A DNA stretch of 64,000 nt, from positions 124,001 to 188,000 of IMG/VR virus record IMGVR_UViG_3300036853_000446; one strand, written 5' to 3'. The position numbers were made by a program, and so were the translations under genes. A model generated the notes under the pieces. It searched no databases, was not told the origin of the DNA, and worked only from the letters and a program-made list of their open reading frames with translations. Shown here piece after piece: positions 18,166 to 55,604 of this stretch; position 1 is the stretch's first letter; the number at the start of each line of letters is the position of its first letter.

Positions 18166-18672
18166 ATGACACTGACCCATGATTATGACCGCCGCTGGCT
18201 AAAGACGGCTGCGGCACGCCTTCCTGGCAGCCTATTTTATCACGGAACAGCAAGTGACTTTGATGCGTTTGACCTATCTGCTTCCGGCGCACGTGACTTC
18301 GGAGACTTTGGGTTCGGAGTATATTTGACCCCCAGTACTACGATGGCTCGAGGATATGCCTATGCCAGCGCAAAGCGGACACACGGTGAACCTAAAGTCC
18401 TCACCGTCAGTGTGCGTCTCCACAACACAGCTGATTTTGACGACCCGAAACTACAGAGCCAGATCGCTGAAACGCTGGCTATTCCATTTCCTCACAAGGC
18501 GTTGACAACCGGTACACGACAGACACGCCCTCGCTCTGAGGCAATAGCTATCACGGACTACGTGCGCGCTTTGGGTTATGACAGTGGCCTCGCACGCAAT
18601 GGAAAGGAACTCGTTGTCTATGATCCCCGCGCGATAACGATTGAGTCCGTGCAACCGGCGTCCGAAGCCTAG
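18166..18672 (+). CDS. ADP-ribosyltransferase-like protein with HDYDRR leader
   Basis: YHGT, GFGVYLT, A..YA, GYDSG, ELVVYDP. Confidence 0.75.
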   Translation: MTLTHDYDRRWLKTAAARLPGSLFYHGTASDFDAFDLSASGARDFGDFGFGVYLTPSTTMARGYAYASAKRTHGEPKVLTVSVRLHNTADFDDPKLQSQIAETLAIPFPHKALTTGTRQTRPRSEAIAITDYVRALGYDSGLARNGKELVVYDPRAITIESVQPASEA

Positions 18673-18679
18673 GGAGCAA

Positions 18680-18710
18680 CGGCTATGCCATTCGCCTACC
18701 CGGGCAAAGT
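18680..18710 (-). pseudogene. 5-prime fragment of a tRNA-Leu (duplicate of the 18011-18096 start)
   Basis: ggctatgccattcgcctacccgggcaaagtt vs ggctattccgttcgcctactcgggcaaagtt. Confidence 0.7.
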
Positions 18711-18767
18711 TCTATCGAAACACAGCCGTGCACTGATTACCGCCGCGCGGTGTAAGGGCCTTGTCAG

Positions 18768-19538
18768 ATGCCTCGTGATCGACTCCGCCCATTCTTCTGC
18801 TATTTCGGTGGCAAGTGGCGTGAGGCTTTGAAAAGCTATCCTGAACCTCGATACGGGACCATCATCGAGCCCTTCGCGGGTGCGGCGGGATTTGCGGCGC
18901 GCTACGCAACTCGCAAAGTAATCCTGTGCGAGATTGACCCCATCATCGCAGCAGTATGGCGGTACCTAATCAAGGTGACGGCCAAAGAGATCTTATCTCT
19001 GCCCGATCTCGTATCGGAAGAGACAGTGGACAATTTGATAGTCAGTCAGGAGGCCAAATGGTTGATTGGCTTTTGGCTCAATAAGGGCACTTCAGGTCCT
19101 CGCAAGAGTCCCTCGACATGGATGCGATCGAATGTTCGGCCGAAGTCATACTGGGGCGCTCATATTCGACAGATCCTGGCATCGCAGGTTGATTCCATCC
19201 GGCACTGGGAAATCCACAACTGCAGCTACGTTGATTGCCCGACCCCACTCGAAGCAACTTGGTTCGTCGACCCTCCCTACGAGGTCGCGGGGCAAGCCTA
19301 CAGATTTGGCTCCAAACAGATCGACTATCAGCATCTCGGTGATTGGTGCCAAACAAGACCCGGACAAGTCATCGTTTGCGAGAACGAAGGAGCAACCTGG
19401 CTTCCTTTTCAGGACCTCGCAAGTGTGAAGGCGAGCCCCAGATCCATTGCGCCAAACCGCCGCTCCAAGGAGGTTTGTTGGTTGAGCACGTTTGAAGAGG
19501 ATGCATACCTGCAAGCCTTCATGCGAGGCGTCGTATGA
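18768..19538 (+). CDS. Dam-like N6-adenine DNA methyltransferase
   Basis: YFGGK, EPFAG, FVDPPY. Confidence 0.85.
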   Translation: MPRDRLRPFFCYFGGKWREALKSYPEPRYGTIIEPFAGAAGFAARYATRKVILCEIDPIIAAVWRYLIKVTAKEILSLPDLVSEETVDNLIVSQEAKWLIGFWLNKGTSGPRKSPSTWMRSNVRPKSYWGAHIRQILASQVDSIRHWEIHNCSYVDCPTPLEATWFVDPPYEVAGQAYRFGSKQIDYQHLGDWCQTRPGQVIVCENEGATWLPFQDLASVKASPRSIAPNRRSKEVCWLSTFEEDAYLQAFMRGVV

Positions 19539-19550
19539 ATACGGTGGCCT

Positions 19551-21851
19551 TCAAATCGCCACCTCGATTTCCTTCATCGTAACCGTCCCTTGAATGTCTT
19601 TGCCGTCGAGCCCTTGGATCGTAAGGCTGTTTTCATCGAGGCTGGTGAACTCCGTGAACCAGATTTGACCGACGATGACTGCCATTCGAATCTGGCTCAC
19701 CTGATGAAGCAGGTCTCGCACTCTGCTCTTCGCATCCGCTGCCTGCCCCTCGAGCCACGCCTTGAAGGCCTTTTCCGGATCGGCGGCCTTCGCGTACACG
19801 CTGGAGGCGAGGAAGTCGTCGACCTCGTTCACGAAAGGCGCCATGAGTGACGAGCTGGCCGTATGCTTGCCCGACGCGATCCGCGTCTGGACGTCCTTCA
19901 GGGTCGGCAACGTGCTGAGGCCTTTGAGCGCGACGTGCAGCTCTTTACCGATGTAGACGTCCTGAGCCTTGGCTTGCTTGCCCTTGGGTCCAAACCCGCT
20001 GTAGTCGGTGATGCCCTGTTCCTTGAGCCACTCGGCGCCGTCCGCGCCGTACAGGACCTTGAAGCCGTCGCTCGCCCGCCTCTCGAACCGGTCCTTCAGA
20101 TAGGTGTTGTAAACCTTCTGTCCAGCCCTCGCGATCGTCAGCTCGTATTCGAGTTCGAAGAACCGCTTGGCGCTAGTCGCTTGCACCATGGCGCGGTTGA
20201 TGATCGGCAGCTCGCGGAGATTTATCGAGAGGACACCGGGCGACACGACCTGAACCGCAGTGGCGGGGATCTTTGCCTTCTTCAGCTTTTGCACCGTGTC
20301 GTCGGTGAGCTTCAACGGCAGCGTCTCGACATTGACCAAGCCGTCACGGATGATCGCGTAGTTTCGATAGGTAAACGTCGGGAAGACGTCGGGGACCTTG
20401 GGAAGCTCACCCCCTTTGCGGTCCTTCAGATTGACGGTGCCCTCGCGTCGCACCTGCACCGAGACATTCGGCCGTTCCTCGTTATAGATGAGCGCGCCGA
20501 CGGGCACCCCGTCGGGCATGGGCGTGGCTTCGAACTTCAGAGGCGCAATTCCCGTCTCGATGTCCGCAAGTCGTGTCTTCAGGTTATCGAGAAGGATGCC
20601 CTTGGCGACTTTCATCTCGCGCCTGATCTCGTCGACCTCCTTCTGTTCCTCCGCGGTCAGACCCGCGTCCTGGACCCGCTGACGGCCGATCCGATTGTAT
20701 TTGAACAGGTCCGAGTCGAGCAGCAGCCGGTTTCCTTCGTCCTCGCTGATGATCCTGAGCAGATCGAGCACCGTGAAAGCATTCTCGTCGGGAACCGCCT
20801 CGGCGTCATAACCCTGCTGGTACCGGAGCCACGGGTCGAAGCAGGCGAGCGTTGCCTCCTCGACAAACGCGGCGTACTTCTGCTTTCCGAAACAACCCGA
20901 CCAAAGTCTGATGAGCCGCACATCGCCGATGGTCTTCAGCAGCTTGAGCACGACGTCTGTCGCCATGCGCTGGCCGTAGAGGGCCACTGCCGCGTAAGCT
21001 GCGGCGATACTGCTCTCGTAGGTGGCGTGGGCGAAGTCAATCCTCACTGGCTCCCCCTTCCCCTCCACCGCAGGTGACAGGTACCAAACCTCGTCGACCT
21101 GCTGAGGTACCGTGACCTTGCCGCCCTCGACCTTGAAGGTCAGCAACGTCGCCCCGTCGATCGCAAACGCAAACCCCTTGATTGCGTCGGCGTCCAAGTC
21201 GACCTCGATTCGCTTTGCCCCGAGCGGACGCTTCTGCATCGCGGCCTCAAAGGCGGGCTCGTACTTCTTGAAATCCTCGTTGAGGATGAGCGCGCCGCCC
21301 GCCGTCTCCGCCATGGAGACCATGAGCGGGTGGTTGCAATAGTAGCCGTACTCGACGAACGTGGCCGACGCGACCACGGGCACGACGTCCTCGACCGCCT
21401 TCAGGATCTGCGCCTGCGACCACTGGTTGTCATGTCCATCGGACATAAAGAAAAGCGAGCAGACGCCCTTTAGGCCGGCAGCGACCCGCTTCACCTCCTC
21501 CAGGGGCTCCTTGAACCCCGTGAGCCCCACCGGCTTGAGCCAGCGGTCAATCGCCTTGTTGATGTCGCTCAGGTCCTTCAGGCTGGCAACGGGCTCGCCC
21601 TTGACCAAAGTGCCGAATTCGCCCTTACCCGAGAACCAAATCAGGCTGAGGGTGTCCCCCTCGGCAATGAGCCGAGGGAGCTTGTCCTTGAGCTGCGTGC
21701 GGATGAGTGGCAGATCCCCGTACATGCTGCCGGAAACATCGATCGCGACCAAATGGTTGGTCGGTTGCGGTGCGAGCTTCGCGCTGGCGGATCGAGGGAC
21801 CGCAACCGACACCAATTCGAATGGGCTGACCGAGTAGGCTGTCTTGGACAT
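19551..21851 (-). CDS. Large vWA-domain protein
   Basis: AIDVSGSM, FMSDG; long C-terminal region unassigned. Confidence 0.8.
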   Translation of the reverse strand: MSKTAYSVSPFELVSVAVPRSASAKLAPQPTNHLVAIDVSGSMYGDLPLIRTQLKDKLPRLIAEGDTLSLIWFSGKGEFGTLVKGEPVASLKDLSDINKAIDRWLKPVGLTGFKEPLEEVKRVAAGLKGVCSLFFMSDGHDNQWSQAQILKAVEDVVPVVASATFVEYGYYCNHPLMVSMAETAGGALILNEDFKKYEPAFEAAMQKRPLGAKRIEVDLDADAIKGFAFAIDGATLLTFKVEGGKVTVPQQVDEVWYLSPAVEGKGEPVRIDFAHATYESSIAAAYAAVALYGQRMATDVVLKLLKTIGDVRLIRLWSGCFGKQKYAAFVEEATLACFDPWLRYQQGYDAEAVPDENAFTVLDLLRIISEDEGNRLLLDSDLFKYNRIGRQRVQDAGLTAEEQKEVDEIRREMKVAKGILLDNLKTRLADIETGIAPLKFEATPMPDGVPVGALIYNEERPNVSVQVRREGTVNLKDRKGGELPKVPDVFPTFTYRNYAIIRDGLVNVETLPLKLTDDTVQKLKKAKIPATAVQVVSPGVLSINLRELPIINRAMVQATSAKRFFELEYELTIARAGQKVYNTYLKDRFERRASDGFKVLYGADGAEWLKEQGITDYSGFGPKGKQAKAQDVYIGKELHVALKGLSTLPTLKDVQTRIASGKHTASSSLMAPFVNEVDDFLASSVYAKAADPEKAFKAWLEGQAADAKSRVRDLLHQVSQIRMAVIVGQIWFTEFTSLDENSLTIQGLDGKDIQGTVTMKEIEVAI

Positions 21852-21904
21852 GAGCCCCCGGTACACCGGAGGCCCATGCCCTCTGTTCGATCCCCCCTAC
21901 GCCT

Positions 21905-22263: not shown

Positions 22264-22893
22264 TCAGTGGATGAGCTTCGCGATGTCCTGCCAGGTTTCG
22301 AGTTCTGCTCTCCAACGCCCGATATCTTCTTCGGTCGTACGATTCTCGCCGTTGATGGTGATGCTGATCCCACCCGCTGCCGCCCGAGCCAAGTACTTGA
22401 GCTTCAACTTGGCGACGTCGCGGAGGATCCCGAAATCGGCCTGAGGAAAATCCTTAATAAACTCCAGGACTTCAGACTCCTTCGAATACATGCCAAGCCC
22501 TGCCCACTGAACGTGCTTCTGGGAATCGAGGTACATGACGCCCGCTAGGTCCATGTACGTGCTGGCCTTCGGCTTGTTCCATCGCCCCGTCTTCGGATTT
22601 TCCGTCTGGCTCATGAAGCGGAAGCCCTTTTTCGGCTTCATTTCGAGCCAGTACCGGATCTTGCACCGCAGCTTGAAGCTGTACGGGTAGTCGTCGACGT
22701 TGTACGCCGTCTGCTCGCTGTCGTGGCCGTAGAGCGGCGTGCCACGACTCGCCACCCTTGCTCCCGCGACGCGCTCGGCCAGACCGAGAAGCTCGCTCGC
22801 GAGTCGCTGCCGCTCGGGATGGCGAGTCTGAGCGTACGCGAGGATTTCGTGAAGCTCACGGGTCAGGTGCTCGGGGCTGGCAATTTTCTGCAT
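22264..22893 (-). CDS. KIASP-leader protein
   Basis: MQKIASPEHLTRELHEILAYAQ..PER..LA..L..LAERVA. Confidence 0.8.
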   Translation of the reverse strand: MQKIASPEHLTRELHEILAYAQTRHPERQRLASELLGLAERVAGARVASRGTPLYGHDSEQTAYNVDDYPYSFKLRCKIRYWLEMKPKKGFRFMSQTENPKTGRWNKPKASTYMDLAGVMYLDSQKHVQWAGLGMYSKESEVLEFIKDFPQADFGILRDVAKLKLKYLARAAAGGISITINGENRTTEEDIGRWRAELETWQDIAKLIH

Positions 22894-22994: not shown

Positions 22995-23324
22995 CTAAAG
23001 CAGATTTGCGCCGCTGGATGCAGCTGCCTCGACGGGATGACCTTCGAAATAGAAGGAGACCGTACCCGGCGCGTTGGATTGAATCCGAGTCAGCCCCAGG
23101 CGGAGCAGGCTCTTCATGTCGTCGCCCATCACGGAAAGGTTGTTGTTCACCTTCGCCGTGAGCATGTGAATCTGATCCTGGACGAAATATTTGTGCTCGA
23201 GAATCTTCGTTGGCGCCAGGTTGCTCACGAAACGCCCGAGGTGGCTGAGCTTTGGTGGAAGCGGATAGTCTCCGCTCCCGTAGGAATTGTCTGCTGCCGC
23301 GATGCGCTCGTAGGAGTAGGTCAT
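22995..23324 (-). CDS. hypothetical protein with YSYER leader variant
   Basis: MTYSYERIAAA; TCGTTTTATCG 13 nt upstream. Confidence 0.7.
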   Translation of the reverse strand: MTYSYERIAAADNSYGSGDYPLPPKLSHLGRFVSNLAPTKILEHKYFVQDQIHMLTAKVNNNLSVMGDDMKSLLRLGLTRIQSNAPGTVSFYFEGHPVEAAASSGANLL

Positions 23325-23347: not shown

Positions 23348-24010
23348 TCAGTGGTAGTCGACCTTCACACCGAGGGTCGCCCATGTCTTGCGAAACATGT
23401 CCAGGCTAATGAAGCGCCGCGCCCGCTCGTGGTTATCCCGCATCCAAGCGTAGAAGGTCTGCGCGTCCCGCTTCTTCTGCGGGTGGTAAGACGTGTCTTG
23501 GAAGAAGCCCGGCTTTCCGGGCGGCCCCTCCATGGCATGGTGATCGGTGATCCGGAAATCCAAGGGAGACGACACGACTTCGATGTAGCCCTTGTCACGT
23601 TGCGGGATCCGGAACTCGAAACTCTCCCCGTTCGGCTCGACGTCGATCGCCCTCAGGTCGGTCATCTCGATGGATATCTCCGTCGGAAAGTCCACTTGAA
23701 CGTCTGTGATAAACCGACAAATCGCGTCGAACCCGCCGCGGGACCCCTCGTCTACGAAAAACCCGCCCATACGCGCAAACCACTCATCGTGTTTGCCCTG
23801 ATACGAGTACGTCAACATAACCGTCATCTCGCGGCATTTCTTCCCGCGCTTCCCGGCATCCGTCAGGTCTGTGACGCGGAGCGAGTCGCTGTACCGGTGA
23901 ACCCGCACCTGGTCGTTCTGAAAGGTCTTGCCGAGCGGCAAACTGCCGGCCGTCAGGTAACGGCGGGCAACACGGTACCGCTGGACGACGCGGGCGACGA
24001 GAGAGGCCAT
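23348..24010 (-). CDS. hypothetical protein with RVV.RY / VARRYL leader
   Basis: MASLVARVVQRYRVARRYLTAG. Confidence 0.75.
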   Translation of the reverse strand: MASLVARVVQRYRVARRYLTAGSLPLGKTFQNDQVRVHRYSDSLRVTDLTDAGKRGKKCREMTVMLTYSYQGKHDEWFARMGGFFVDEGSRGGFDAICRFITDVQVDFPTEISIEMTDLRAIDVEPNGESFEFRIPQRDKGYIEVVSSPLDFRITDHHAMEGPPGKPGFFQDTSYHPQKKRDAQTFYAWMRDNHERARRFISLDMFRKTWATLGVKVDYH

Positions 24011-24042
24011 AACGGTCATGGGACGACAATAGAAAAAATCGG

Positions 24043-24111: not shown

Positions 24112-24121
24112 ATACACCGAG

Positions 24122-24571: not shown

Positions 24572-24901
24572 ATGATCCACGACTACCAGCGACGCACGTC
24601 CGGTCAGCAACGATACGATGCACTCATCAGACAAATCGTCTCCGAGGTAGACGACGTCACCGAACCGGTCAAGCGGGTTGTCACGAAACTTCCAAGGCTC
24701 ATCGACACATTGGAAGAACTGGTCGAAAACGACGACGAGCTGAGGTCAACAGATCCCCGGGGTGGCAAACGGTACGGAATCGATCAGGTTCTCACGGAAA
24801 TGCGTAAGAGGCTCGAAGCGGTCAAGGATGCAACGACCGACCTCGAATGGGCGTACGACGAGCTAAACAATCGCTTCCAAAAGAACGTCCCGCGCACCTA
24901 A
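24572..24901 (+). CDS. helical protein with HDYQRR leader
   Basis: MIHDYQRR; TCTTTTGAAG 11 nt upstream. Confidence 0.75.
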   Translation: MIHDYQRRTSGQQRYDALIRQIVSEVDDVTEPVKRVVTKLPRLIDTLEELVENDDELRSTDPRGGKRYGIDQVLTEMRKRLEAVKDATTDLEWAYDELNNRFQKNVPRT

Positions 24902-31294: not shown

Positions 31295-31882
31295 TCAAAT
31301 CCTCAGGACGAAAACCATGAGGGTGTTGTAAGCATCCGGCGCGAGCTTGAGAATGGCCATCATGGTTATTGCCGCCCCTTGCTCGTACGCATCAGCAGCC
31401 AGATTGGTGATGAGCCCATTCTTCGAGGCGTAAAGTTCGTCACCGGCGAAGTAGGTGAGCACCTCGCCGGAGTTTAGGTCGAACGTCTCCCACAACGAAT
31501 TCGCAAACGTGCCACCGTCCGCGTAATAGGATGCTTCGCCCGAAGCGATGCCCGGCGTGTTTTCGAACGGCACCCCGCGCGCGTCCGCAATGAAGAGCCC
31601 AAGGGGCCTGACTCTCGGATTGTACGCTGCTGGGGGACCGCCCACGGAGCCGTTGGCGACGTCAGGGCGTGTGCACGCAACCGTGCCACCGAGAACGCCG
31701 CGCGTCTTGACCCCCGATAATGTCGTCGAGACGTGGGTCAGGATATTAGGTGGGTTGGTCTGCGTCAGCGCGTCCGGCGTGTACGGCTCACCGGTGACGC
31801 GAATCCCAGAAATATAGAGCGGCTGGATGCGCCTCTGGGTTTCGGCGTAGTCTCCGGAGCTTTGACCGATTTGCAACGGCAT
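31295..31882 (-). CDS. Putative capsid decoration/cement-like structural protein
   Basis: PLGLF..FENTPGIASG..YET-like..TY..GDELYASKNGLIT beta-rich pattern; assignment by resemblance only. Confidence 0.55.
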   Translation of the reverse strand: MPLQIGQSSGDYAETQRRIQPLYISGIRVTGEPYTPDALTQTNPPNILTHVSTTLSGVKTRGVLGGTVACTRPDVANGSVGGPPAAYNPRVRPLGLFIADARGVPFENTPGIASGEASYYADGGTFANSLWETFDLNSGEVLTYFAGDELYASKNGLITNLAADAYEQGAAITMMAILKLAPDAYNTLMVFVLRI

Positions 31883-33401: not shown

Positions 33402-34325
33402 ATGCGCATCGCCAACACCCGAGATTTTCAGGTTGCCCTCCTGCAGGTGATCCGTCACGCGAACCAACCGCATCCTTCCCGCGGCGCGATTGCCGAACGA
33501 CTCGAAAGTCTAGGTGAGCGGCTCGGCGCACGGAAGGCGCCCGCAAAAGAGCCCAAGGCTCCAGGCTCACGGTTACGGAAGAAGAAAGACGCGCCGCCGA
33601 TAGGGCGCCAAGTCCTGGTGAACATCGCTCAGAAAGAAGCGCAGCAGCTCGACTATCTGAAGATGACGCTCGCGGGGGCCGTCTCCGAAGTAAAGAAAGA
33701 GGTCAAGGAGATTCGGGAGGGGATCGAACGGCTCCAAGAGGATGCCAAGCTCGACGACAAGGAACTCTCCAAGGCTGACGTCGATGAGAAGTGGGCGGCC
33801 AATGACTACTTTTCGGGGATGCTCCTCGATTCGATCATCAACGCCGTGGATTTTCTGGCGGGCACGCTAGAGGACCACGAGAACATCACCCAAGAGACCG
33901 AGTTGGCCAAGGCCGTGCGGGACTTCCAGAAGAAGATTCCCGACGAGGGTACCTGGCCCAAGGGCAAGGGCGAGAAGCAATTCAACGAGGTCATCAAGGC
34001 GCTCAGTAGCGCCGCCGCCATGGTACCCACGGGGCTGAGCAAGCCGAGCGAGTTGACCAAGCTCCGCGAAGTCTTCGAAGGGATCGCCGACATAGCCAAG
34101 CTCATGACCGGCAAGTCCGTCAGCGTACCGAAGATCCCCAAAGCCCTTGACCCAGAAGACCCCCGACAGCTCGGCTTTGGCTTCTCAGCTTCCAGCCGCC
34201 GGATCGCCAGCACGGCTGAACTCAAGGGTCAGCTCGATGCGATCTGGCAGGCGTCCAGTGAGCCTCATCCGTCACGACAGGCGCTCGGCGCAGCGCTCTT
34301 CAACATCGCCAGTAGCCTCCGCTGA
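33402..34325 (+). CDS. Protein with KIASP-type module at both termini
   Basis: N: MRIANTRDFQVAL..HPSR; C: RRIASTAELKGQL..HPSRQALGAALFNIAS. Confidence 0.8.
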   Translation: MRIANTRDFQVALLQVIRHANQPHPSRGAIAERLESLGERLGARKAPAKEPKAPGSRLRKKKDAPPIGRQVLVNIAQKEAQQLDYLKMTLAGAVSEVKKEVKEIREGIERLQEDAKLDDKELSKADVDEKWAANDYFSGMLLDSIINAVDFLAGTLEDHENITQETELAKAVRDFQKKIPDEGTWPKGKGEKQFNEVIKALSSAAAMVPTGLSKPSELTKLREVFEGIADIAKLMTGKSVSVPKIPKALDPEDPRQLGFGFSASSRRIASTAELKGQLDAIWQASSEPHPSRQALGAALFNIASSLR

Positions 34326-35504: not shown

Positions 35505-36140
35505 ATGCACGACTACGATAGACGCAGACTCGCCGCGGCGGAGACCACCGAAACCGTTACAAACATCCACTGGATGTACGTGGAGCACGAGAAGATCGCG
35601 CAGCGCGCCCTGATCGACCATCAAGCAAGACTCGGCAAGATCGAAACGAAGACACTGATCCGGGAAAACGTAATACGCCTCACAGGCACCACGACGGACG
35701 GCAGGACCTTCCGGATTGAAACGACCTTCTTTGTCAAGGAGATGATCGTTCAGTCCGAGACGCGAACGATCGTCGAAGGGACCGTGTCCATGGGACCGGT
35801 CCCCGATGTACTTCCAAGAGTGGAAGCTTCCGTCTCGAAGCTCTTGCAGGGTTTGACGAGTCTTGGGCTCGAAAAGCGCGACTACTTCAACTTTGCGAAA
35901 GGATGGGCCCACATCGCCCACGACATTGAGGCTTGGCGTCGTGGTGATGTCGTGAACACAAAGGGTTTGCGGTCGAGCTTGAGCTATCTCGTAAAGGAAA
36001 CCAAAAACCTCACCGACAAGCTACGAAGCACGTTCCCGGCAGGCGAGTTGCCTAAAGAGCAGCGGCAGCTCATCGATCTACTCGAGGAGGCCAGCAAAGC
36101 CCTCGGGGCCGCCGCGCGTGGTATTCCAGATATTGGTTGA
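35505..36140 (+). CDS. hypothetical protein with HDYDRR leader
   Basis: MHDYDRRRLAAA; TCTTTTGATG upstream and AGAGGAAG SD. Confidence 0.8.
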   Translation: MHDYDRRRLAAAETTETVTNIHWMYVEHEKIAQRALIDHQARLGKIETKTLIRENVIRLTGTTTDGRTFRIETTFFVKEMIVQSETRTIVEGTVSMGPVPDVLPRVEASVSKLLQGLTSLGLEKRDYFNFAKGWAHIAHDIEAWRRGDVVNTKGLRSSLSYLVKETKNLTDKLRSTFPAGELPKEQRQLIDLLEEASKALGAAARGIPDIG

Positions 36141-42100: not shown

Positions 42101-42808
42101 TTACGACGCTACTTCCCATCTGTCCGTACTCAGATAGTCGTTTAGGCGGAACCGGAACATGGGGTAATCCCCATCTTTGGCGCCGATGAACGACGACGAC
42201 GTGACCTTTGTGACAAGCCAGATGCTGCCATTCCCGACGCCCTCACTATACCAAGAGGCATCGACGCATTTAACCTTCATCCCTGGAGTCAGCTTCGGCT
42301 TGTCCACCAGGCCACTCCACTCAAAATACTCCGGTAACTGCTGGCGAATTTCCTTCTCCAACTGGTCCTTCGTGTAACTTCGGCCGCCGGTTGCCCTCGC
42401 GAGAGCGCCACTCCACTCGGGCACTTCAAACAGAGGGACGATAAACGCGACGTCTTCTTCATACCAGTAATAACCCCCCTTTAGTTCGCCGATGCGGCGC
42501 GCAGCCGGACTCAACAACTTACGGGCGACGCCGCTAGCGACACCAAGGCCGCCGTGGCCTGGGGTGCTCACCCACCGGACGCCGCGCGCGATCTCGTCAA
42601 CGGTCTGAGCGGCGCCCCACGGTGTTGATGGCCCGGAGCCGTCAGGGAACTGCTTGCTCGCGGCTTCGACATCATGCCCGGCGACACGGTAACTCAGATG
42701 CCTCAAAGCAGCAGCCAAACGCGCTCGTGACGGATTGGGGGTGCGAGCGAGCCTAATGACCGCGGCTAGCTCAGCTTGAAGCTCAATTGCGTTACTGATC
42801 TTCTGCAT
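42101..42808 (-). CDS. KIASP-leader protein
   Basis: MQKISNAIELQAEL..NPSRARLAAALRHLSYRVA; cargo TPWGAAQ..WYEED. Confidence 0.8.
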   Translation of the reverse strand: MQKISNAIELQAELAAVIRLARTPNPSRARLAAALRHLSYRVAGHDVEAASKQFPDGSGPSTPWGAAQTVDEIARGVRWVSTPGHGGLGVASGVARKLLSPAARRIGELKGGYYWYEEDVAFIVPLFEVPEWSGALARATGGRSYTKDQLEKEIRQQLPEYFEWSGLVDKPKLTPGMKVKCVDASWYSEGVGNGSIWLVTKVTSSSFIGAKDGDYPMFRFRLNDYLSTDRWEVAS

Positions 42809-43182: not shown

Positions 43183-43548
43183 CTACGCCCTCGGCTTGAT
43201 CTTCATCAGAGCCTGGTGAAAGTCATCGGCTGCGTGCTGGATGATTATGGCCGCCGGGACGTGATCACGGCTGATCTTCTGCACGCCGAGCGCCAGCCAA
43301 CCCAGGCACTCATAGATGTTGTTGGCCGTCTGATCCCCCTTGGCCGCCTTCTTGAGGTCGGCGACGGCCTTCTCGATATCCGCCAGTGCATCCTTCGGCG
43401 GCGCCGGTTCGTCGACCGCAGCCACGACGCGGTTGGCCAAGCCCTCGAGGAGGACGGCAATCTTCCTTCGGGAGCAACCGTCGGTGACCTGCGCGAGGAC
43501 CCGTCGAATTTCGGTCTGCAATTGTTGAGGTGTTGCGATCTCGGGCAT
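43183..43548 (-). CDS. KIASP-leader protein
   Basis: MPEIATPQQLQTEIRRVLA..SRRKIAVLLEGLANRVVAA. Confidence 0.78.
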   Translation of the reverse strand: MPEIATPQQLQTEIRRVLAQVTDGCSRRKIAVLLEGLANRVVAAVDEPAPPKDALADIEKAVADLKKAAKGDQTANNIYECLGWLALGVQKISRDHVPAAIIIQHAADDFHQALMKIKPRA

Positions 43549-44452: not shown

Positions 44453-44794
44453 TCAGCCTTTGCTTTTCTTGACCTTAACGATGTTCTTCTCGCTGGCGAT
44501 GTCGGGGGTGCCATGACGACCGCCCATGTTGAGGACCCATCCAGCGGGACCCTTCATCACGGCCTTGCCCGTATGTTCCTTGCCAAAGCGGTCGACGATC
44601 GTCACCCGATCGCCCCGGCCGATGCTGTCAACCAGGGCCTCGGGATCGTCGGAGGCTTCCTTGCCGATGACCTCATTCGCCAGGCGTTGTAGCTCGGAAG
44701 CGATCCGGGATCGGGATGGCCTCGCCGAGCGGGCATACGCGAGCAAGTCGTGAAGATCAGACTGGAGTTCCTGAGGTGAAGCGATCTTGTTCAT
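44453..44794 (-). CDS. KIASP-leader protein with small SH3-like cargo
   Basis: MNKIASPQELQSDLHDLLAYARSARPSRSRIASELQRLA; GDRVTIVDRFG. Confidence 0.82.
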   Translation of the reverse strand: MNKIASPQELQSDLHDLLAYARSARPSRSRIASELQRLANEVIGKEASDDPEALVDSIGRGDRVTIVDRFGKEHTGKAVMKGPAGWVLNMGGRHGTPDIASEKNIVKVKKSKG

Positions 44795-44993: not shown

Positions 44994-45749
44994 TCAACCA
45001 CGGTCCATCTCGGTTTCCAATCGCTTGATGAAGTCCGCAGTAGGCATCCCGCGGATGTCCAGAAACAGCGAATCTTCGTTCAGGTAGACCGCTTGTGCCT
45101 TAAACCAGACGGTGTTGTCGCGGTCGTTCCGTCGCTTTGCCCACGGCACCTTCAAGTTCGGCTTCACCTGCCAACCGTGTTGAGGCAGCTCTTGCAGGAT
45201 ACGGGCGCGGGCATCCGGATACTTCTCGTGGCGGAGGTCGCCGGGCAGGCTCTGCTTGCGATCCTTCTCTACGCGGCGACGCTCGGGTCCCAGTTCTTTC
45301 GCACGGTCCCGAATCTTCTGCCCGTCAGCCCGCTCCTGCTCCCTCTGGCGCTTCATCGACTCGATCTGCTGCTCGAGCACTCGCTCGGCGCGTTGCCGTT
45401 CACGCTCGTCGTCCCGATCCTTCTCCTCGAGCACCTCGGGAATCTCGAACTTGGCGACGAAGGCGGCATCCAGGATCTGTGCAGCGTCGCCGTTTCCGTG
45501 ATTTTGCGCCTTCTGGACGGCTCTCCACCGAGCGGCGTCTACTTCGTCGGGACTAGGCCGAGCCCCGGATGGGAAGCCGAGAAGCTTGAGGGCCACCTCG
45601 TATTTTTGATGGTGAGTGCTCGCAAGCCTACTGGCCAAGCTCCGCAGATGTGTGGCGATCCTTTTCCGCGAAGGGGTGCCTGTCCGCGTATACGCAAGAA
45701 CGGCTCGAAGTTCGTCCTGCAGCTCGGTAGGGGATGCAATTTTCTTCAT
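44994..45749 (-). CDS. KIASP-leader protein with degenerate J-like segment
   Basis: MKKIASPTELQDELRAVLAY..PSRKRIA; LKLLGFPSGARPSPDEV without HPD. Confidence 0.8.
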   Translation of the reverse strand: MKKIASPTELQDELRAVLAYTRTGTPSRKRIATHLRSLASRLASTHHQKYEVALKLLGFPSGARPSPDEVDAARWRAVQKAQNHGNGDAAQILDAAFVAKFEIPEVLEEKDRDDERERQRAERVLEQQIESMKRQREQERADGQKIRDRAKELGPERRRVEKDRKQSLPGDLRHEKYPDARARILQELPQHGWQVKPNLKVPWAKRRNDRDNTVWFKAQAVYLNEDSLFLDIRGMPTADFIKRLETEMDRG

Positions 45750-46456: not shown

Positions 46457-46711
46457 ATGCACAGCTACGACTACGACCGTCGCGTTTGGCCCAGGCTCGC
46501 TTCTACCGAATGGTCATGGAAGCCCGTATCTGGACCGCCCGGCACGGGGTACGTTACGAGCAATGGCCGCGCAGTTCTCCACAAGCAGGGTCGAGATTGG
46601 TTCCTCACCCTCGACGGTAAAGACCACCCGATCCACTCCCGCAAACCGGGCTTTGATCACGCCGAGACGATCCTACAGCGCGAGCTTGGACGTGGCTACG
46701 ACCGCCACTGA
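46457..46711 (+). CDS. small protein with YDYDRR leader
   Basis: MHSYDYDRRVWPRLAS. Confidence 0.72.
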   Translation: MHSYDYDRRVWPRLASTEWSWKPVSGPPGTGYVTSNGRAVLHKQGRDWFLTLDGKDHPIHSRKPGFDHAETILQRELGRGYDRH

Positions 46712-48185: not shown

Positions 48186-48530
48186 TCAACGCTTCAAGCT
48201 CAACACGAGCCTCAACCCCGAATCCAGATCTTGAATCTGACGCTTTGGCAGTGTCCCGATCCGCTTGTCAAAGAGCGACTTGTCGATGGTCATGACCTGG
48301 CACACCAGGATGACGGAGTCCTTCTTCAGACCACTCGTTTTCGTGTCGAGTCGGACATTGCCCACAGCAAGAGCGCGCTGCAGATTGGACGTGATGGGAG
48401 CAACCATCACGGTCGAAAGGCGACTGTCGGTCAATAAATCATCCTGCACTATGACAACCGGACGTTCGAACGCGGGAGCCGACCCTTTGGGCTCGCCGAG
48501 ATCGACATACCAGATCTCACCACGCTTCAT
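48186..48530 (-). CDS. mazF: MazF/PemK-family endoribonuclease toxin
   Basis: KRGEIWYVDL..RPVVIVQ..VAPITS..CQVMTIDK. Confidence 0.92.
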   Translation of the reverse strand: MKRGEIWYVDLGEPKGSAPAFERPVVIVQDDLLTDSRLSTVMVAPITSNLQRALAVGNVRLDTKTSGLKKDSVILVCQVMTIDKSLFDKRIGTLPKRQIQDLDSGLRLVLSLKR

Positions 48531-48766
48531 TCCTCGGTCCAATCGACCGCCAGCAAGGCCTTGCGGGCAGCTTGGCGCCGCAGCTCGTCCTCGTCGCCGT
48601 CCGCAAATGCCGCGTCATAGGACGCCTTGACGCTCGCTTCGAGGCTGGTCGCCAGGTACGCTTTGACCGCCCGCGTGAAGAACTCGCTCCGAGACATGCC
48701 GAGCTGCGCAGCGGTCGCTTCCGCTTCCTCGAATACCTCGTCCGGAATCGAGATTGCAGTCTTCAT
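48527..48766 (-). CDS. Ribbon-helix-helix antitoxin
   Basis: MKTAISIPDEVF..LGMSRSEFF; ATGA overlap with toxin. Confidence 0.88.
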   Translation of the reverse strand: MKTAISIPDEVFEEAEATAAQLGMSRSEFFTRAVKAYLATSLEASVKASYDAAFADGDEDELRRQAARKALLAVDWTEE

Positions 48767-48864: not shown

Positions 48865-51843
48865 TCACTCTCCGCGGCCCATGGCGAAATCATGCAGGTC
48901 TTCCGCGTCCTTCTTCTCCTGGTCCTGCCGCATGACGATCTCGAGGCGCCGCACGGCCTCCGCGTGGTTCGTCGGGTCGCGCTCCATGCCGATGAAATGC
49001 ATCCCCTCGAGCACGGCCGCGTGGAGCGTAGTACCCGAGCCGGCGTACATGTCCAGCACCGTGCCGCCTTTTTGTGTGACGAGCTTGACCAACCATCTGA
49101 TGAGCGCCAAGGGCTTCAACGTGGGGTGTTGAATTTCGAACTCGCCGCAGCCGGCTTCTTTACGGTTGGCCTTCGGAATATAGCGGAATGGCACGCCGCC
49201 CTGCGCGTCGAACTGAGTAAAGAACCGATCCACGCCGCCCTCGTCCGTGAGCCGGGTTCCGGCTTTGAACTGAAAATCAGCCATGTCCGTTCCCCTTTCC
49301 GCTAAGCCCTTGTTTTCAGTCGAGCCACCATTCGGGTGATGTCCTGACTCGACCCCCTGCTCCCGTAGCGCCCTGACGGGGCATCCTTCCACGCAAATCC
49401 AGTCTTCTACCGTTTCCAGGCCGTCGGGACCCGCGTAGCGCTGACTAGGCGTTTCCTTGGGCTGCCACCCGTCGTCGTTCATTATTCCGAGGGCCTCTAA
49501 CCGCCGCTTGCCACCGGGTGGGGTTTTGACGTCCTTCAGCCCGACGCGCTCACAGCCCGGGGCGTGAATGAACACAGCGTTCGGAGGCCATCTGCCTTTG
49601 CTAGCATCCTCGTCGGATTTGTCGGCCTCGAACTGGGTGAAGAAGCGAGAAGCACCGCCGGCATCCTGGTACGTGACATGATCATGCGCAGCCTGTGCAC
49701 CATCTGAGAAGGCGCCATTCTTCCCCTCGTAATTGAAATCGACGTGAACTTCCGAGGGGTCGTTGTTTGGGGAAGTGTATGAGCTGCGACGCTCGCCGCT
49801 CTGATCGTCGAGGGCCTTCACCGGACATCCTTCCACGCAGATCCAGTCGGCCACTTCCTCCTTCCCATCGAATCCAGCGTAACCGAGTTCGTCGCCTTCG
49901 ATGATGTTGTCCCCGTGCCACCCCCCTGTGTAGCCTGCCTTTGTACGGCCTTTACCCGTACAAAGAGACTTAGTGGTCACACGCTTAATGCCGACGCGCT
50001 GGCACCCCGCTCGACCTTCAACGTCTGGGACGTGTTCGAATACGGCGTTCGAAGGCCACCTGCCTTTGCTCTGGTCCTCGTCGGGTTTGTCGGCTTCGAT
50101 TTGGGTAAAAAACCGCGAGGCGCCCCCCTCATCGTCGTAGAGGGGGCCCTGGGTGTTGTGACCGAGATCCCCTCGTGTGTAACCACCACCACGGCTGTAC
50201 GTGGTTGGATAGTTGCCCGAGGATCGCCGATTACCGCTCTGATCGTCGAGGGCCTTCACCGGACATCCTTCCACGCATTCCCAGGCCTCCGTCTCTTCAA
50301 GGCCGTCCGAACCAACGTGGCTCGTTGTCTGCTGGTACTCAAAGCTCCCGTAGACGACCCTCGAGGGGGCCACATACTTCTTGTCCGGTACAGGTTCGCC
50401 TTTGGCTGCCGCCGCATGTGAACCTTTGATCCTCTTCGACCCGATGCGCTGGCAACCCGGGCGTCCGTCAGCATCGGGGACGTGCTCGAGCAGGACGTTG
50501 CTCGGCCACCTACCTTTGCTCGCATCCTGAGAATCTGCCTCGATCTGCGTGAAGAACCGCGAGGCCCCGCCGGCATCCGCGTAGACTTTGCTCAGGTGCG
50601 TTCGCTCCCCGAGGAACGTGGACGTAGGGTTCATCTCCGTGCCCGGGTGCTCGTGGCTCACGTCCGGGTCCGCGCGCCCCGTCAGCGTGCTCGGCCGATC
50701 GCCGCTCATGGCGTCTAGGGCACGTACAGGGCATCCTTCGGCGCATTCCCAGGCCTCGACCGTTTCGTTGCCGTCGTCATCGCCATAGCCACCACCACGT
50801 TCCTGAACCTGTGGCTGCCAGCCATCGTCGTTCATTTTGCCCAACGCACTATGCCGACGAGTTCCCTGCATGATGGCCGCAACCTTTTTTGACCCGACAC
50901 GCTGGCAACTCTCGGAATGTTCGAGCACGACGTTGCTCGGCCACCTTCCGCCGGCCTTGACCTCGTTGGCGCCGCTGAGGTCGCTGTCGTTCTTCCACGA
51001 TTTATCCCGGCTGCCGCCCTTCTCACGGATGGCATCGACGCCCTTCTTGTGGGTCTCGAAATCTTCCTGCGAGGCGTGCCGCACGCGGGTGGCGTCGATG
51101 TTGAGCCCGCCCGTCCCGTGCTTCAGGACGTTCGACGCGAGCGTGCCCTCGAGCGGCTTGCGGAAGACCAAAATTGGCTCAAATGCAGGCTTGAGTCCAC
51201 TCCCCCACCCAGACCAATGTTTGGCCTCGTCGGATGCTGGCGCGTACTGGTGGTGATATTTCTCGACCTGCTCTGGGTCCTTCATCCAAGGCCGAGAGAA
51301 CCCCACAGCGTGAGGGCCCGATTCGGAGAGATTTACGACGCTAGAGTTGTTACCCCGATCAGCAAATTCCTCGTGACCCGGCTTGATCCCAACCAGCTGC
51401 GTGCGCGTCTTCCCGAACCGATTGTCGATGCCTTTGCTTATATCATGGCTCTTTGGCATGCCCTGACCCTGAATCCATTGCAATATCGGATAGTTACGAC
51501 CGATCGTGTCGCGGCATTCGAACCCCGCCATTCGAAGCCCGATGCTAATCAGGTCGAACGTTCTTGTTCCTCCGAACGAGAGCACGTGACCGCCGGGCTT
51601 GAGCACGCGGTAGACCTCGCGCCAAACGGCAACGCTCGGAATGCTCCATTTTTGGCCCATGAAGTCATTTCCAGTGTCGAGCGTGCATCCGAGCACGTAC
51701 GCAAAGATGTCCTCCGGCGACGGGTCCTTGTTCCCGAGCCCATATGGCGGATCTACAACGGTGGCATCTATTGAATCCGAAGGAAGGTCACGGAGAAGGT
51801 CGAGACAATCACCGAGAAGAATCTGATCGAGAGGGAGGTCCAC
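48865..51843 (-). CDS. Beta-class N4/N6 DNA methyltransferase, 992 aa, with internal repeats
   Basis: DPPYG N-terminal; HPTLKP..LDMYAGSGTT C-terminal. Confidence 0.9.
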   Translation of the reverse strand: MDLPLDQILLGDCLDLLRDLPSDSIDATVVDPPYGLGNKDPSPEDIFAYVLGCTLDTGNDFMGQKWSIPSVAVWREVYRVLKPGGHVLSFGGTRTFDLISIGLRMAGFECRDTIGRNYPILQWIQGQGMPKSHDISKGIDNRFGKTRTQLVGIKPGHEEFADRGNNSSVVNLSESGPHAVGFSRPWMKDPEQVEKYHHQYAPASDEAKHWSGWGSGLKPAFEPILVFRKPLEGTLASNVLKHGTGGLNIDATRVRHASQEDFETHKKGVDAIREKGGSRDKSWKNDSDLSGANEVKAGGRWPSNVVLEHSESCQRVGSKKVAAIMQGTRRHSALGKMNDDGWQPQVQERGGGYGDDDGNETVEAWECAEGCPVRALDAMSGDRPSTLTGRADPDVSHEHPGTEMNPTSTFLGERTHLSKVYADAGGASRFFTQIEADSQDASKGRWPSNVLLEHVPDADGRPGCQRIGSKRIKGSHAAAAKGEPVPDKKYVAPSRVVYGSFEYQQTTSHVGSDGLEETEAWECVEGCPVKALDDQSGNRRSSGNYPTTYSRGGGYTRGDLGHNTQGPLYDDEGGASRFFTQIEADKPDEDQSKGRWPSNAVFEHVPDVEGRAGCQRVGIKRVTTKSLCTGKGRTKAGYTGGWHGDNIIEGDELGYAGFDGKEEVADWICVEGCPVKALDDQSGERRSSYTSPNNDPSEVHVDFNYEGKNGAFSDGAQAAHDHVTYQDAGGASRFFTQFEADKSDEDASKGRWPPNAVFIHAPGCERVGLKDVKTPPGGKRRLEALGIMNDDGWQPKETPSQRYAGPDGLETVEDWICVEGCPVRALREQGVESGHHPNGGSTENKGLAERGTDMADFQFKAGTRLTDEGGVDRFFTQFDAQGGVPFRYIPKANRKEAGCGEFEIQHPTLKPLALIRWLVKLVTQKGGTVLDMYAGSGTTLHAAVLEGMHFIGMERDPTNHAEAVRRLEIVMRQDQEKKDAEDLHDFAMGRGE
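49200..50950 (-). repeat. Four tandem ~140-150 aa modules in the methyltransferase
   Basis: GRWP(S/P)N x4, WxCxEGCPV x4, GGASRFF x3 plus GGVDRFF. Confidence 0.9.
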
Positions 51844-52897: not shown

Positions 52898-53481
52898 GTA
52901 TAGTCGCCGCCACGATGGCGCGCGATCGGCAGAATCCTGGGCCCGTGATGAACCGTAAAGAGCGGCGGCGACTCAAGGTCACCCACGGGCAGCAGCTCGA
53001 CCGGATGCTGGCCGAACGAAAGTGTGCGGCGTGCACGGGATGCTGCACGGTGCTGGCCATTGAGGAACTCGATAAACCTGCGGGTGTTCCCTGTCAGCAC
53101 CTCAGTAGCGACGGCGGGGGCTGCGGCATCTACGAGACCAGGCCCAAAGCCTGTCGCGAGTACGACTGTGGTTGGCGGCTAGGTGTCGGCACGCTCGAGC
53201 AGAGGCCCGACCGCATGGGCGTCGTGATGAGCCCGATCGCCCCGGGCTTACCGGGCCACCCGGGTGCAGTCGTGCACGAGCTGTGGCCGGACGCTTTCGA
53301 CGATGCCCAGGCGTTTTTGGCAGACGTGGCGCGGGGCTTGGTTCTGCTTCTCATCCGCGATGATCTCATCAAACGAGTGATGGGACCCGAGGACAGGATT
53401 CACGGCATGAAGTCCGAGATGGAAGTGCTTCGTCGATTGAACGCAGAGACGCGGGCGGCTAAAGGGCTCGGCACCAAGTAG
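52894..53481 (+). CDS. YkgJ-family CxxCxxCC Zn/Fe-chelating protein
   Basis: CAACTGCC..CQHL..CGIYETRPKAC..YDC. Confidence 0.85.
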   Translation: MSIVAATMARDRQNPGPVMNRKERRRLKVTHGQQLDRMLAERKCAACTGCCTVLAIEELDKPAGVPCQHLSSDGGGCGIYETRPKACREYDCGWRLGVGTLEQRPDRMGVVMSPIAPGLPGHPGAVVHELWPDAFDDAQAFLADVARGLVLLLIRDDLIKRVMGPEDRIHGMKSEMEVLRRLNAETRAAKGLGTK

Positions 53482-53530
53482 GGCGCGCCAGGATAATGTC
53501 TCTATCAGGCGTCACCTTGTCGAGAAGGTG

Positions 53531-54826
53531 ATGAACAGAAAGGCAATGGCATTGAAGGTCGCGCGGGCGTGGTTGCGACGTGCTGCGGTCGTGCCCGATG
53601 ACCTCTTTGATCGATATTCACATCAATTGAAGGGGATCCTTTCCGGTCCCACCTCAGGGCCACGCAGCGTCGCACAGATGATTCGCAAGGGCATCGAGCC
53701 GTTGTTCCATCAGTTCGTGCATGATCTCCGCGAGACTGGGCTTACACGAAACCTCCTCGCGCATGTCGTTCGCAATCTCAATGCCGACCTGAAGATCCTG
53801 AAAGAGATTGAGACGAACCTCGAAAACCTGCACATCGCAATGACCTGCCCGCAGGGTGACGACAAATATTTGCCCGAGCACGAGATCAAGTGCCGCCTTG
53901 CCAGTGTGTTGAAAGATTGGTTCGACAACAGCGTCAAAACAATCGACCAAGCCCTTTTAGAGAACTGGTCGGTACGCTCCATAGGTGCAACCGGCCTCGT
54001 TGACCAGATCCTGAAGCAGGCCAGCCCGAAAGAATTGTCGATGCTCGGGGCTGTTGCGAACGGAGATGAGTCGACGGAGGTCCTTCAGCAACTGCGCGCC
54101 TTCAACGTGCGCGCTGTCGACCCCCTCGCCAAGAAACTCGTCATCAAAAACTGGCTCGGCGACGACAATTGGTGGCTCGGCCTGTTTGACCAAGTGAAGC
54201 GTAATCTCACCCACGAATCCGCCACCGATAGACCCGATGAGCAATTCGACCTTCACGGGATGAAGGTCGTCGTCGACGACGATACGGTGAACGCGGCTGA
54301 TATCCGTGCCTATGTTAAATACTTCGATATCGCCTATCAGAGCCTGAAGTCGAGGCGACTCCACTCGGCGTGGTACGGCGACATACTGATCGATTGCAAA
54401 GGCTGCGGGGGAGTCATCGATACGGGCGCAAATATTGGTGGCCACTTCAACGTCGGAAAGGATCAGGTCACGATCTTTGCTCGACCCGGCCCGACGATCA
54501 GCTACATTGTGGTACATGAGCTTGGACACCGGTACTGGTTCAAGAGCTTGTCGCGAGGCCAGCGCGGCAAGTTCGAATCCCTCGTAAAGGTGAAGGGCGA
54601 CGGCGCCAAGCCGGTCCTTCCCGTCTCTGACTACGGTGCTTCAAACATCGACGAAGCGTTTGCCGAGGCATTCGCCTGGTATGTCCTCCGCCGGAAGATG
54701 AACGCCGATCAAGAGGCTTCATTCAAGGCGGTCCTGCTCGACAAGGATCGCCGCTCCGTCACGTCCAAAACGGCGTCGAGATCGACGAGCGCCGCAAGAC
54801 GAGTCAGACGACCTCGATCTTCCTGA
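53531..54826 (+). CDS. Zincin metallopeptidase (LF/MPTase-like) with KVARAWL leader
   Basis: VVHELGHRYW, SDYGASNIDEAFAEAF. Confidence 0.8.
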   Translation: MNRKAMALKVARAWLRRAAVVPDDLFDRYSHQLKGILSGPTSGPRSVAQMIRKGIEPLFHQFVHDLRETGLTRNLLAHVVRNLNADLKILKEIETNLENLHIAMTCPQGDDKYLPEHEIKCRLASVLKDWFDNSVKTIDQALLENWSVRSIGATGLVDQILKQASPKELSMLGAVANGDESTEVLQQLRAFNVRAVDPLAKKLVIKNWLGDDNWWLGLFDQVKRNLTHESATDRPDEQFDLHGMKVVVDDDTVNAADIRAYVKYFDIAYQSLKSRRLHSAWYGDILIDCKGCGGVIDTGANIGGHFNVGKDQVTIFARPGPTISYIVVHELGHRYWFKSLSRGQRGKFESLVKVKGDGAKPVLPVSDYGASNIDEAFAEAFAWYVLRRKMNADQEASFKAVLLDKDRRSVTSKTASRSTSAARRVRRPRSS

Positions 54827-55604
54827 CCTTCACATTCCGTGGGTTGAACACGGCGATCTCCGGCACGCCTTGGACGAGGTTGGTGCCGTAGAAAAAGACC
54901 GAGTCATACCCTTTTGATCGCGCTTTACGAGCCTGGCTCGTGCTCTTCGTGACCAGCGGATTGCTGACAGTCACCGCCACCGTATAGACCTTCGGGCGGT
55001 ACGTTTTAGAATCCAGGCCGAGCGCGTCGAGGTTGTCATAAACATAGTCGGGAGCGCCCGTAGAGGAATTCATCAACTCGTCGAGCACCGAGTCCGTCTC
55101 GGACCCGAGGGGCTTCACTTTGCTGCCGATGATGTATGCGGCCAGGTCGCTCACGGCGTTGGGGTCGACGCCGAGGTAGTCCTCGAAGCCGACGAGGTCG
55201 ACATGTCCCTCTCCCGGGCCCGGATTCTCTCGCCAGAAACCGGCATCCTGGAGGGCGCGCGTCCACCCGCCGTCTCCGTGCTCGACGAGCATCTCGAGGA
55301 ATCTGCCGGCGGCCGGTTTCCTCCGCTTCAGGTCCGCGACGATCGTGGGCGAGAAGCCTATGTTACGGTTCGCGTAGGCGTACTCGCCGGCAACCCGCTT
55401 GCTCGGGGTCAGGAAGATCCCTCTGCCGTAATAGCTGTCGACCAGTTCGTCGCGGCTCTGACCCATGTCGAAGCTGCGAAAGAGCCGCGTCGTGCCGTGG
55501 TAAAGGGTCACCGGATGGCCCGTGCGAAGGCCCTCCAGATGGTACTCGACGAGAGGATCTACGGTCTCGCGCGCGACCCGGCGATCGTAATCGTAGGCCA
55601 GCAC
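54804..55604 (-). CDS. ADP-ribosyltransferase-like protein with YDYDRR leader
   Basis: LYHGT, GRGIFLT, A.EYA, GYDSV, EIAVFNP. Confidence 0.75.
   Translation of the reverse strand: MLAYDYDRRVARETVDPLVEYHLEGLRTGHPVTLYHGTTRLFRSFDMGQSRDELVDSYYGRGIFLTPSKRVAGEYAYANRNIGFSPTIVADLKRRKPAAGRFLEMLVEHGDGGWTRALQDAGFWRENPGPGEGHVDLVGFEDYLGVDPNAVSDLAAYIIGSKVKPLGSETDSVLDELMNSSTGAPDYVYDNLDALGLDSKTYRPKVYTVAVTVSNPLVTKSTSQARKARSKGYDSVFFYGTNLVQGVPEIAVFNPRNVKVRKIEVV

Follow-up and report, generated by a model that had tools for sequence, protein, structure and literature searches.

A short N-terminal DYDRR leader on unrelated genes of a huge phage, a candidate virion-targeting tag

Why should six genes of an uncultured huge phage, the bodies of which are for the most part unrelated, begin with the same few residues? 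The question is raised by a 64-kb stretch of DNA (hereafter the window), positions 124,001–188,000 of the 407,634-bp metagenomic contig JGI 3300036853 Ga0376046_0000005 (IMGVR_UViG_3300036853_000446), in which a sequence-only reading had noticed a short peptide, DYDRR, at the N-termini of six predicted proteins. Here we show that this leader is real and that selection acts on it at the protein level, and we discuss what it might do. Our best explanation, in which we place roughly even confidence, is that DYDRR could be a capsid- or virion-targeting leader for injected effectors.

In a six-frame translation of the window, the pattern [HY]DY[DQ]RR occurs five times, compared with 0.003 occurrences expected from composition, and it is absent from all 200 dinucleotide-preserving shuffles of the window. 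A broader expression, [YHF].Y[DEQ][RY][RTI], matches six times (versus ~0.3 expected), at the same six sites, the sixth copy being the variant YSYERI. Each copy begins 1–4 codons past a start codon, in agreement with the earlier claim that it lies within the first seven residues, and positions as near a start as these make up 2.8% of the proteome. All six N-termini were found at the positions first given for them. Those positions had been listed without strand: they are correct for the plus-strand genes, and 55604 and 23324 are the high-end starts of minus-strand genes. Run over the window, the search that the sequence-only reading had proposed returned five strict copies and one variant, and no internal copy was found within window proteins.

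The codons that specify the motif vary between genes (CAT/CAC, GAT/GAC, TAT/TAC), with Arg encoded by CGC, CGA, AGA, CGT or CGG. Identical residues share a codon in 21 of 50 pairs, versus 21.4 expected from codon usage in the window, and the DNA flanking the six leaders differs between genes. Since codon choice within the motif is free, the constraint falls on the peptide and not on DNA or RNA, which settles in favor of a protein motif the question, posed from the outset, of whether conservation lay at the nucleotide level. The bodies behind the leader, as originally described, are unrelated: BLASTP among the six found no similarity except between two ADP-ribosyltransferases (ARTs), both of which match the Pfam family PF18760 (ART-PolyVal) above its cut-off of 31.2 bits.

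ART1 (168 amino acids, aa; 18166–18672, plus strand) carries the leader MTLTHDYDRR (18166–18195), with its ART domain beginning at YHGT (residue 25), and scores 40.9 bits against PF18760 (E 4.4e-10). ART2 (266 aa, GTG start; 54804–55604, minus strand) carries (M)LAYDYDRR (55578–55604) and scores 44.6 bits (E 3.2e-11). Of the H-Y-E positions in the ART alignment, H26 and E148 show no variation and Y53 hardly any. A 109-aa protein of unknown function with the leader MIHDYQRR (24572–24595; gene 24572–24901, plus strand) is encoded between opposite-strand tRNA genes, is coding by a codon-usage model, and had no family match. The 211-aa tagged protein (35505–36140, plus strand), a gene also called by JGI, starts MHDYDRRR, with the leader MHDYDRR at 35505–35525. 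Its AlphaFold2 model (predicted local distance difference test score, pLDDT, 87.8) has a compact body of a four-strand sheet and four helices that found no fold match in the PDB, preceded by coil over residues 1–27 (pLDDT 54–64); the leader is thus predicted to be a flexible extension ahead of a folded body. An 84-aa basic protein (isoelectric point 9.5; 46457–46711, plus strand) carries MHSYDYDRR(VWPRLAS) (46457–46504). The variant leader MTYSYERI (23301–23324) belongs to another 109-aa protein (22995–23324, minus strand), likewise supported by the codon-usage model, and falls within the range of the family elsewhere (MTYLYERTAAK, MSYIYELRSAK, and MKTYSYDRRY). No Pfam family covers any of the leaders, and the tagged window proteins are single-domain by Pfam.

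The leader extends well beyond the window. Among 13 homologues of the 211-aa protein, MHDYDRR is unchanged in nine, though the bodies are 35–67% identical, and more distant homologues start MSYSYDRTAAK, MSYDYDRTAAD, or MTYTYDRTAAT. These alignments show the leader as the best-conserved part of this family, kept more strongly than the cargo itself. Homologues of ART1 from other metagenomes start MSPYDYDRRR, MPHDYDRRR, MKTYSYDRRY, (V)TRGYDYR, or MYTASYDYR, and ART2 has 222 homologues, on contigs of up to 659 kb. The consensus over 68 leader instances is M-[ATSP]-[YH]-[DST]-Y-D-R-R-[AV]-A-[AK], with the central Tyr at residue 4–8 in 60 of them. In a 437-kb relative, three small tagged genes stand in tandem (MNAYSYDRT, MSKYDYDRR, and MGYDYDRR) and adjoin a methyltransferase gene and an array of 26 tRNAs, much as in the window. 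A scan for the pattern M-A-Y-S-Y-D-R-R matched two contigs of IMG/VR, of 233 and 380 kb, each time at the N-terminus of a further, 133-aa cargo, and the capsid-gene loci of related contigs, 826 kb in all, contain the strict pattern once, again N-terminally. The leader sits almost always at the extreme N-terminus, and the peptide is kept across contigs of 51–64% GC with different codons.

Related phages also exchange the leader on the same enzyme. In ART2 homologues, the segment ahead of the LDLSxYGLEGL...LYHGT body falls into discrete classes: among the 120 listed of 222 homologues, ~50 carry YxYDRR, sometimes tandemly duplicated (for example, MAYSYDRRGYSYDRR), ~40 carry an amphipathic ..RVAARF/Y..AK leader (class 2), and ~10 carry SLRSRVIRLAHxxPxLRPxLLPLLKTA. 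A tree built from ART2 bodies only implies at least 19 changes of leader class among 99 tips, compared with ~40 when labels are shuffled. In the window phage itself, class 2, the substitute for DYDRR on ART2 orthologues, heads at least three further genes: a GNAT acetyltransferase of 146 aa (37659–38099, minus strand; leader MSTLSRVAQRYL; PF00583 26.5 bits versus a cut-off of 20.7), a 390-aa protein (36384–37556, minus strand; leader MMLEPLVANVVRRF), and a 223-aa protein (23348–24019, minus strand; leader MTVMASLVARVVQRY). LR745208.1 (485 kb), found through ART2 at 58% identity and the only complete relative in the phage collection, encodes a homologue of the body of the 223-aa protein and an orthologue of the 390-aa protein (28.6% identity over 367 aa) that starts MSQVPQADRVASRFLQ, also class 2.

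The leader can also be missing from an orthologous cargo or stand inside a longer protein. The orthologue of the protein encoded at 46457 in the 437-kb relative has a body 62% identical to it and starts MTWSWKP, without the 16-residue leader. In two fusions (P0034 and P0038), a 135-aa domain is followed by AYSYDRR and then ART2; in a third (P0129), a GNAT domain 50% identical to the product of the separate GNAT gene of the window is followed by a class 2 leader and then ART2. As judged from these comparisons, the leader is shown to behave as a separable module, exchangeable on orthologous cargo. Conservation as protein, together with exchange on the same enzymes by related phages, makes an address tag the most likely function.

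To what address, then, might it be sent? In T4, propeptides of 10–20 residues bring Alt, an ADP-ribosyltransferase, and the internal proteins into the core of the prohead (PMC5694885; PMC5512222), and injection together with the DNA is predicted for the proteins that contain ART-PolyVal-type domains (PMC5512222). The T4 capsid targeting sequence (CTS) is MKTYQEFIAE. The strongest clue comes from the T4-related Ackermannviridae, in which the ART-PolyVal homologue starts MKTFLEFYRE (Kuttervirus aagejoakim) or MKTFLQYLQE (ORF173 of Dickeya phage LIMEstone1), and this T4-type leader directly precedes the same YHG[ST] catalytic start. ORF173 of LIMEstone1 is a 'confirmed structural protein' by electrospray ionization tandem mass spectrometry (ESI-MS/MS) of virions, which also detected ORF080 (MKPFIQYFNE) and ORF082 (MSKPSFLQFMQE), proteins of unknown function with similar leaders; ORF079 has the same kind of leader. 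Given a CTS-type tag and the presence in virions of the homologous ART in a T4-like lineage, we take capsid or virion targeting as the best explanation of DYDRR.

On this explanation, the DYDRR peptide would act as a modular N-terminal address tag that recruits unrelated small proteins, among them two H-Y-E-type ARTs and several unknown proteins, into the assembling procapsid or virion. Its binding partner would be a component of head assembly, and the packaged cargo may enter the next host along with the DNA. The job would equal that of the T4 CTS of 10–20 residues for internal proteins and Alt, with the tag position in huge phages held by DYDRR or by alternate leaders. Where domains can be recognized (ART, ART plus GNAT, ankyrin repeats, and a weak match to ParB_N), the cargo is effector-like, and it includes domain types of polyvalent proteins (ART-PolyVal and the ParB_N match). 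Like the CTS and the LIMEstone1 leaders, DYDRR is a short N-terminal peptide common to unrelated, mostly small, non-essential-looking proteins; like the CTS, it has an ADP-ribosyltransferase among its cargo (that of LIMEstone1 being a true PF18760 homologue of the window ARTs), and it is a separable module on genes that sometimes stand in tandem. Tagged genes also occur beside head genes. In one relative (capsid locus L128), the major capsid gene is followed, 86 nucleotides on and in the same orientation, by an 82-aa gene that starts MSHDYDRRQ. In LR745208, a 134-aa gene tagged with a further leader (class 3, described below) is flanked by the major capsid gene and a scaffold-like gene with a KE-rich product, downstream of the terminase and portal genes.

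Several observations weigh against this explanation. The DYDRR consensus has no sequence similarity to MKTYQEFIAE, the T4-like form being found only in the Ackermannviridae homologues, and no conserved cleavage site, of the [LIA]-x-E type or any other, lies between leader and body. A-x-E/S-x-E follows four window copies (AAAE, VARE, ASTE, and IVSE), but it is absent in ART1 and its orthologues, in which 6–10 residues separate leader from body, and it is not conserved in ART2 orthologues. The likeness to the T4 signal drawn by the sequence-only reading is thus partly borne out: as an analogy of function it holds, and the LIMEstone1 ART homologue and the swappable module strengthen it, whereas the sequences are unrelated and no cleavage site is conserved after the leader. 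The detection of LIMEstone1 ORF173 consisted of one peptide, and packaging is a prediction for the huge-phage group, in which, unlike in T4, several leader classes coexist and swap. A tblastn search with LIMEstone1 gp13–gp23 against the window and the complete LR745208 gave no match at E 1e-3; since T4-type gp20–gp23 are not detectable by BLAST in LR745208, a core like that of T4 cannot be taken for granted. Both placements in head clusters are sporadic, lineage-specific insertions, which most of the ~190 other capsid loci lack, and the tagged genes of the window lie in a tRNA and accessory region, away from recognizable structural genes. At least two leader classes occur together in the window phage, which a single receptor does not explain. 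Finally, motifs shared upstream of the leader genes gave no clear late-promoter signal.

Much of what favors capsid targeting would serve equally well for a docking peptide directed to some other partner or compartment, such as a phage chaperone, a phage compartment within the cell, the lumen of the tail, or a host complex acted on by all of these effectors. The evidence from modularity and conservation is identical for both, the phage encodes its own chaperonin and DnaJ-domain protein, several leader classes per genome would fit several destinations or partners, and the tagged genes of the window are not clustered with structural genes. Such a peptide leaves unexplained, however, both the CTS-type leader and virion presence of the ART homologue in a T4-like phage and the tagged genes inserted beside capsid genes, and its partner is hypothetical; we consider it unlikely, though likelier than the alternatives below. 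A tag for degradation or processing, whether an N-terminal degron or a protease site that times the activity or removal of toxic effectors, would agree with the extreme N-terminal position, with a Tyr at residue 3 in about half of cases, with the exposed and flexible peptide predicted by the model, and with ART cargo that could harm the phage's own program. The leader does not follow the bacterial N-degron rules, however: its destabilizing residue is not the first one, and a conserved cleavage upstream is lacking. Physico-chemically different leaders (the amphipathic RVAARF helix, the 27-aa LRSKLIRLAH..., and MNWLQKIS) replace DYDRR on the same cargo, and internal copies persist at the domain junctions of fusion proteins, which together make this function quite improbable.

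Explanations at the level of DNA or RNA fare worse. The leader might be a relic of gene birth or shuffling, in which a start region already in place captured new genes behind it, or an element in the mRNA or DNA (a translation initiation region, a repressor site, or a recombination site), and an exact 10-mer, CTTCTTTTGA, does stand upstream of two of the six leader genes. In T-even phages, moreover, CTS-coding DNA flanks hypervariable internal-protein loci. As a shared element, the 10-mer was rejected, as it is not enriched (five matches in the window versus 2.8 expected). Together with the unlike flanks, the free codon choice (including five Arg codons), and the retention of the peptide across GC contents and codons described above, this largely refutes a nucleic-acid element, and we regard explanations of this kind as very improbable. 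The twin arginine of copies such as DRRWLKTAAA resembles the S/T-R-R-x-F-L-K of the twin-arginine translocation (Tat) pathway, and RR is followed by Ala-rich residues in some copies, but a Tat- or Sec-type export signal scarcely seems credible. There is no hydrophobic h-region, the residues after RR are charged or polar (RRRLAAAETTETV, RRTSGQQRYD, and RRVARETVDP), the catalytic domain starts 6–10 residues past RR in ART1 orthologues (6–20 overall), and the cargo consists of enzyme types that act in the cytoplasm; a Tat signal was rejected on these grounds.

The upstream regions hold one recurrent element. CTATC (often CCTATC) lies 12–45 nucleotides upstream of five of the nine class 3 leader genes of LR745208, compared with 29 of 610 other genes of that genome, among which are those for an RNA ligase, a homing endonuclease, and a structural protein of the virion. 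Because it precedes the RNA ligase and homing endonuclease genes too, it permits no inference on the timing of expression. It may be a promoter or an initiation element other than a Shine-Dalgarno sequence. In the window, a recognizable Shine-Dalgarno sequence is absent (a ribosome-binding-site score of 0 in our custom gene caller) upstream of many confidently coding genes, including several of the leader-tagged ones.

How does DYDRR compare with other delivery systems? Encapsulin cargo-loading peptides are short linear peptides that direct unrelated cargo into a shell of HK97-type fold. They differ from DYDRR in being usually C-terminal, in having another consensus, and in serving a cellular nanocompartment. 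The inner-body propeptides of phiKZ-like giants (SPN3US and phiKZ) resemble it in that many packaged ejection proteins carry them and the N-termini of paralogues are conserved, and prohead targeting has been proposed for them (PMC5694885). They are mostly 80–130 residues long, however, and are removed at A/S/G-x-E by a T4-like protease, while the DYDRR leader has 8–16 residues and no conserved site. The capsid protein of the complete relative also resembles that of Bacillus phage G: the LR745208 major capsid protein (phrog_2522) shares 37% identity with phage G gp27 and 48% with its counterpart in Tunturiibacter phage Tunturi_5. Polyvalent proteins (Iyer et al. 2017, PMC5512222) share an ART-PolyVal and ParB-like repertoire, predicted delivery with DNA, and fusions like those among relatives of the window phage (GNAT-leader-ART2 and ART-GNAT). 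They combine 2–15 disparate effector domains in one polypeptide, often with MuF or portal anchors, whereas the window effectors are single-domain and carry a short leader apiece; fusions of two domains were met in relatives only, and no MuF domain was seen.

Other shared leaders point to a wider pattern. When the N-termini of the 619 predicted proteins of LR745208 were clustered with no prior assumption, exactly one family with unrelated bodies emerged, and the remaining N-terminal families were ordinary paralogues. This family is the 27-aa class 3 leader, MTTLRSKLIRLAHxNPxLRPxLLPLLKEA, carried by nine genes scattered round the genome with none of 36 body pairs related; a tblastn search with it found 11 places. 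LR745208 itself has no YxYDRR leader. Searched against 50,697 phage records, ART2, the 211-aa cargo, and the class 3 leader matched only LR745208 or nothing, and among the same records no cultured relative with virion proteomics bears these leaders. Low-GC relatives of ART1 carry a different leader again, MNWLQK[IL]S. On the 522-kb contig NPIG01000001.1 (9561–19293), nine consecutive plus-strand genes start MNWLQK(I/V)(S/A) or the variants MNWLVT, MSWLKK, and MNWLIN, with synonymous codons that vary, and their products include an ART, a GNAT-like protein, and a helicase-like protein of 760 aa. In some of the larger products the MNWLQK motif appears again, internally or close to the C-terminus, and the array looks like split polyvalent-protein modules. 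Shared leaders are thus a general phenomenon in huge phages, with at least three tag classes seen in this clade (YxYDRR, the RVAARF type, and the 27-aa LRSKLIRLAH...) and MNWLQKIS in another.

Full-text searches of the literature returned no phage paper with DYDRR and no paper with MNWLQK. The concept is of the CTS kind; what is new is the other phage lineage, the new sequences, and the previously undescribed swapping of leaders. We suggest, tentatively and as a rather doubtful extension, that interchangeable N-terminal tags form a combinatorial system that sorts a fast-evolving effector arsenal to distinct virion destinations or loading slots. If so, tag swapping together with gene fusion and fission (split polyvalent proteins) would drive the evolution of the arsenal, and the tags would serve as handles that can be moved onto foreign proteins to load them into very large capsids. 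If DYDRR is a packaging tag at all, the proteins injected by a huge uncultured phage would be identifiable from sequence alone, and the injected set would represent its first-minute weapons, ADP-ribosyltransferases and acetyltransferases among them, most with unknown folds. The CTS principle would then have arisen or diversified in lineages without detectable T4-type head genes, with several interchangeable tags, and it would offer a handle for effector discovery in hundreds of huge-phage genomes. Even with another destination, a peptide of 6–8 residues that outlasts its cargo in conservation across 51–64% GC would mark an unrecognized step of sorting or recognition in huge-phage infection.

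The wider window (GC ~60%) has no DNA-level similarity to any phage record, and 11 of its 79 genes have a homologue in LR745208. It holds 30 tRNA genes, all on the minus strand and spread over 24 kb (16248–40650), interleaved with protein genes on both strands; three of the DYDRR genes are antisense to them. Other genes encode the chaperonin (GroEL-like) and the DnaJ-domain protein mentioned above, DNA polymerase III delta/delta', a class II ribonucleotide reductase, LigA, and a 992-aa N6/N4 methyltransferase (48865–51843, minus strand), which lies close to leader-tagged genes here as in the 437-kb relative. The flanking stretches of the contig that were covered, 5.8 kb on the left and 9.7 kb on the right, contain no leaders. 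Of all window genes, the one for a 771-aa vWA-domain protein (19551–21866, minus strand; phrog_2426, E 3.6e-176) shows the strongest codon bias; the LIMEstone1 homologue of this protein (ORF108) was detected in virions by mass spectrometry. A PemK/MazF-like toxin gene (48186–48766, minus strand) with a small antitoxin-like gene upstream was identified by eye from N-termini, and a SocA_Panacea-domain protein is encoded at 4170–4724 (minus strand).

Six window genes share a common N-terminal module of ~45 residues, M.KIASP.ELQ.EL..VLAYART..PSR.RIA..L..LA.RVA, ahead of unrelated bodies (22264–22893, 42101–42808, 43183–43548, 44453–44794, and 44994–45749 on the minus strand and 33402–34325 on the plus strand). 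One of these bodies is DUF7007, and the module, for which no Pfam family was found, is a third and longer shared N-terminus in the window phage. Homology between it and the 27-aa class 3 leader was considered and is unsupported (hhalign E 0.085).

Two further observations concern capsid loci. The LR745208 major capsid protein (291 aa) has at least 89% protein identity to its counterparts in the best 80 of 496 IMG/VR loci, which range from 33% to 65% GC, and this conservation is unusually strong for a phage capsid protein. A conserved gene product of 207–228 aa encoded immediately ahead of the major capsid gene in LR745208 and its relatives is 37% identical to a 195-aa protein of the window (31295–31882, minus strand), where no capsid gene follows. 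At the L128 locus, the gene after the tagged one (7505–8170, plus strand) contains an internal class 2-like RVAARYL and has the C-terminal end ...FSYDRR, just ahead of a 557-aa gene.

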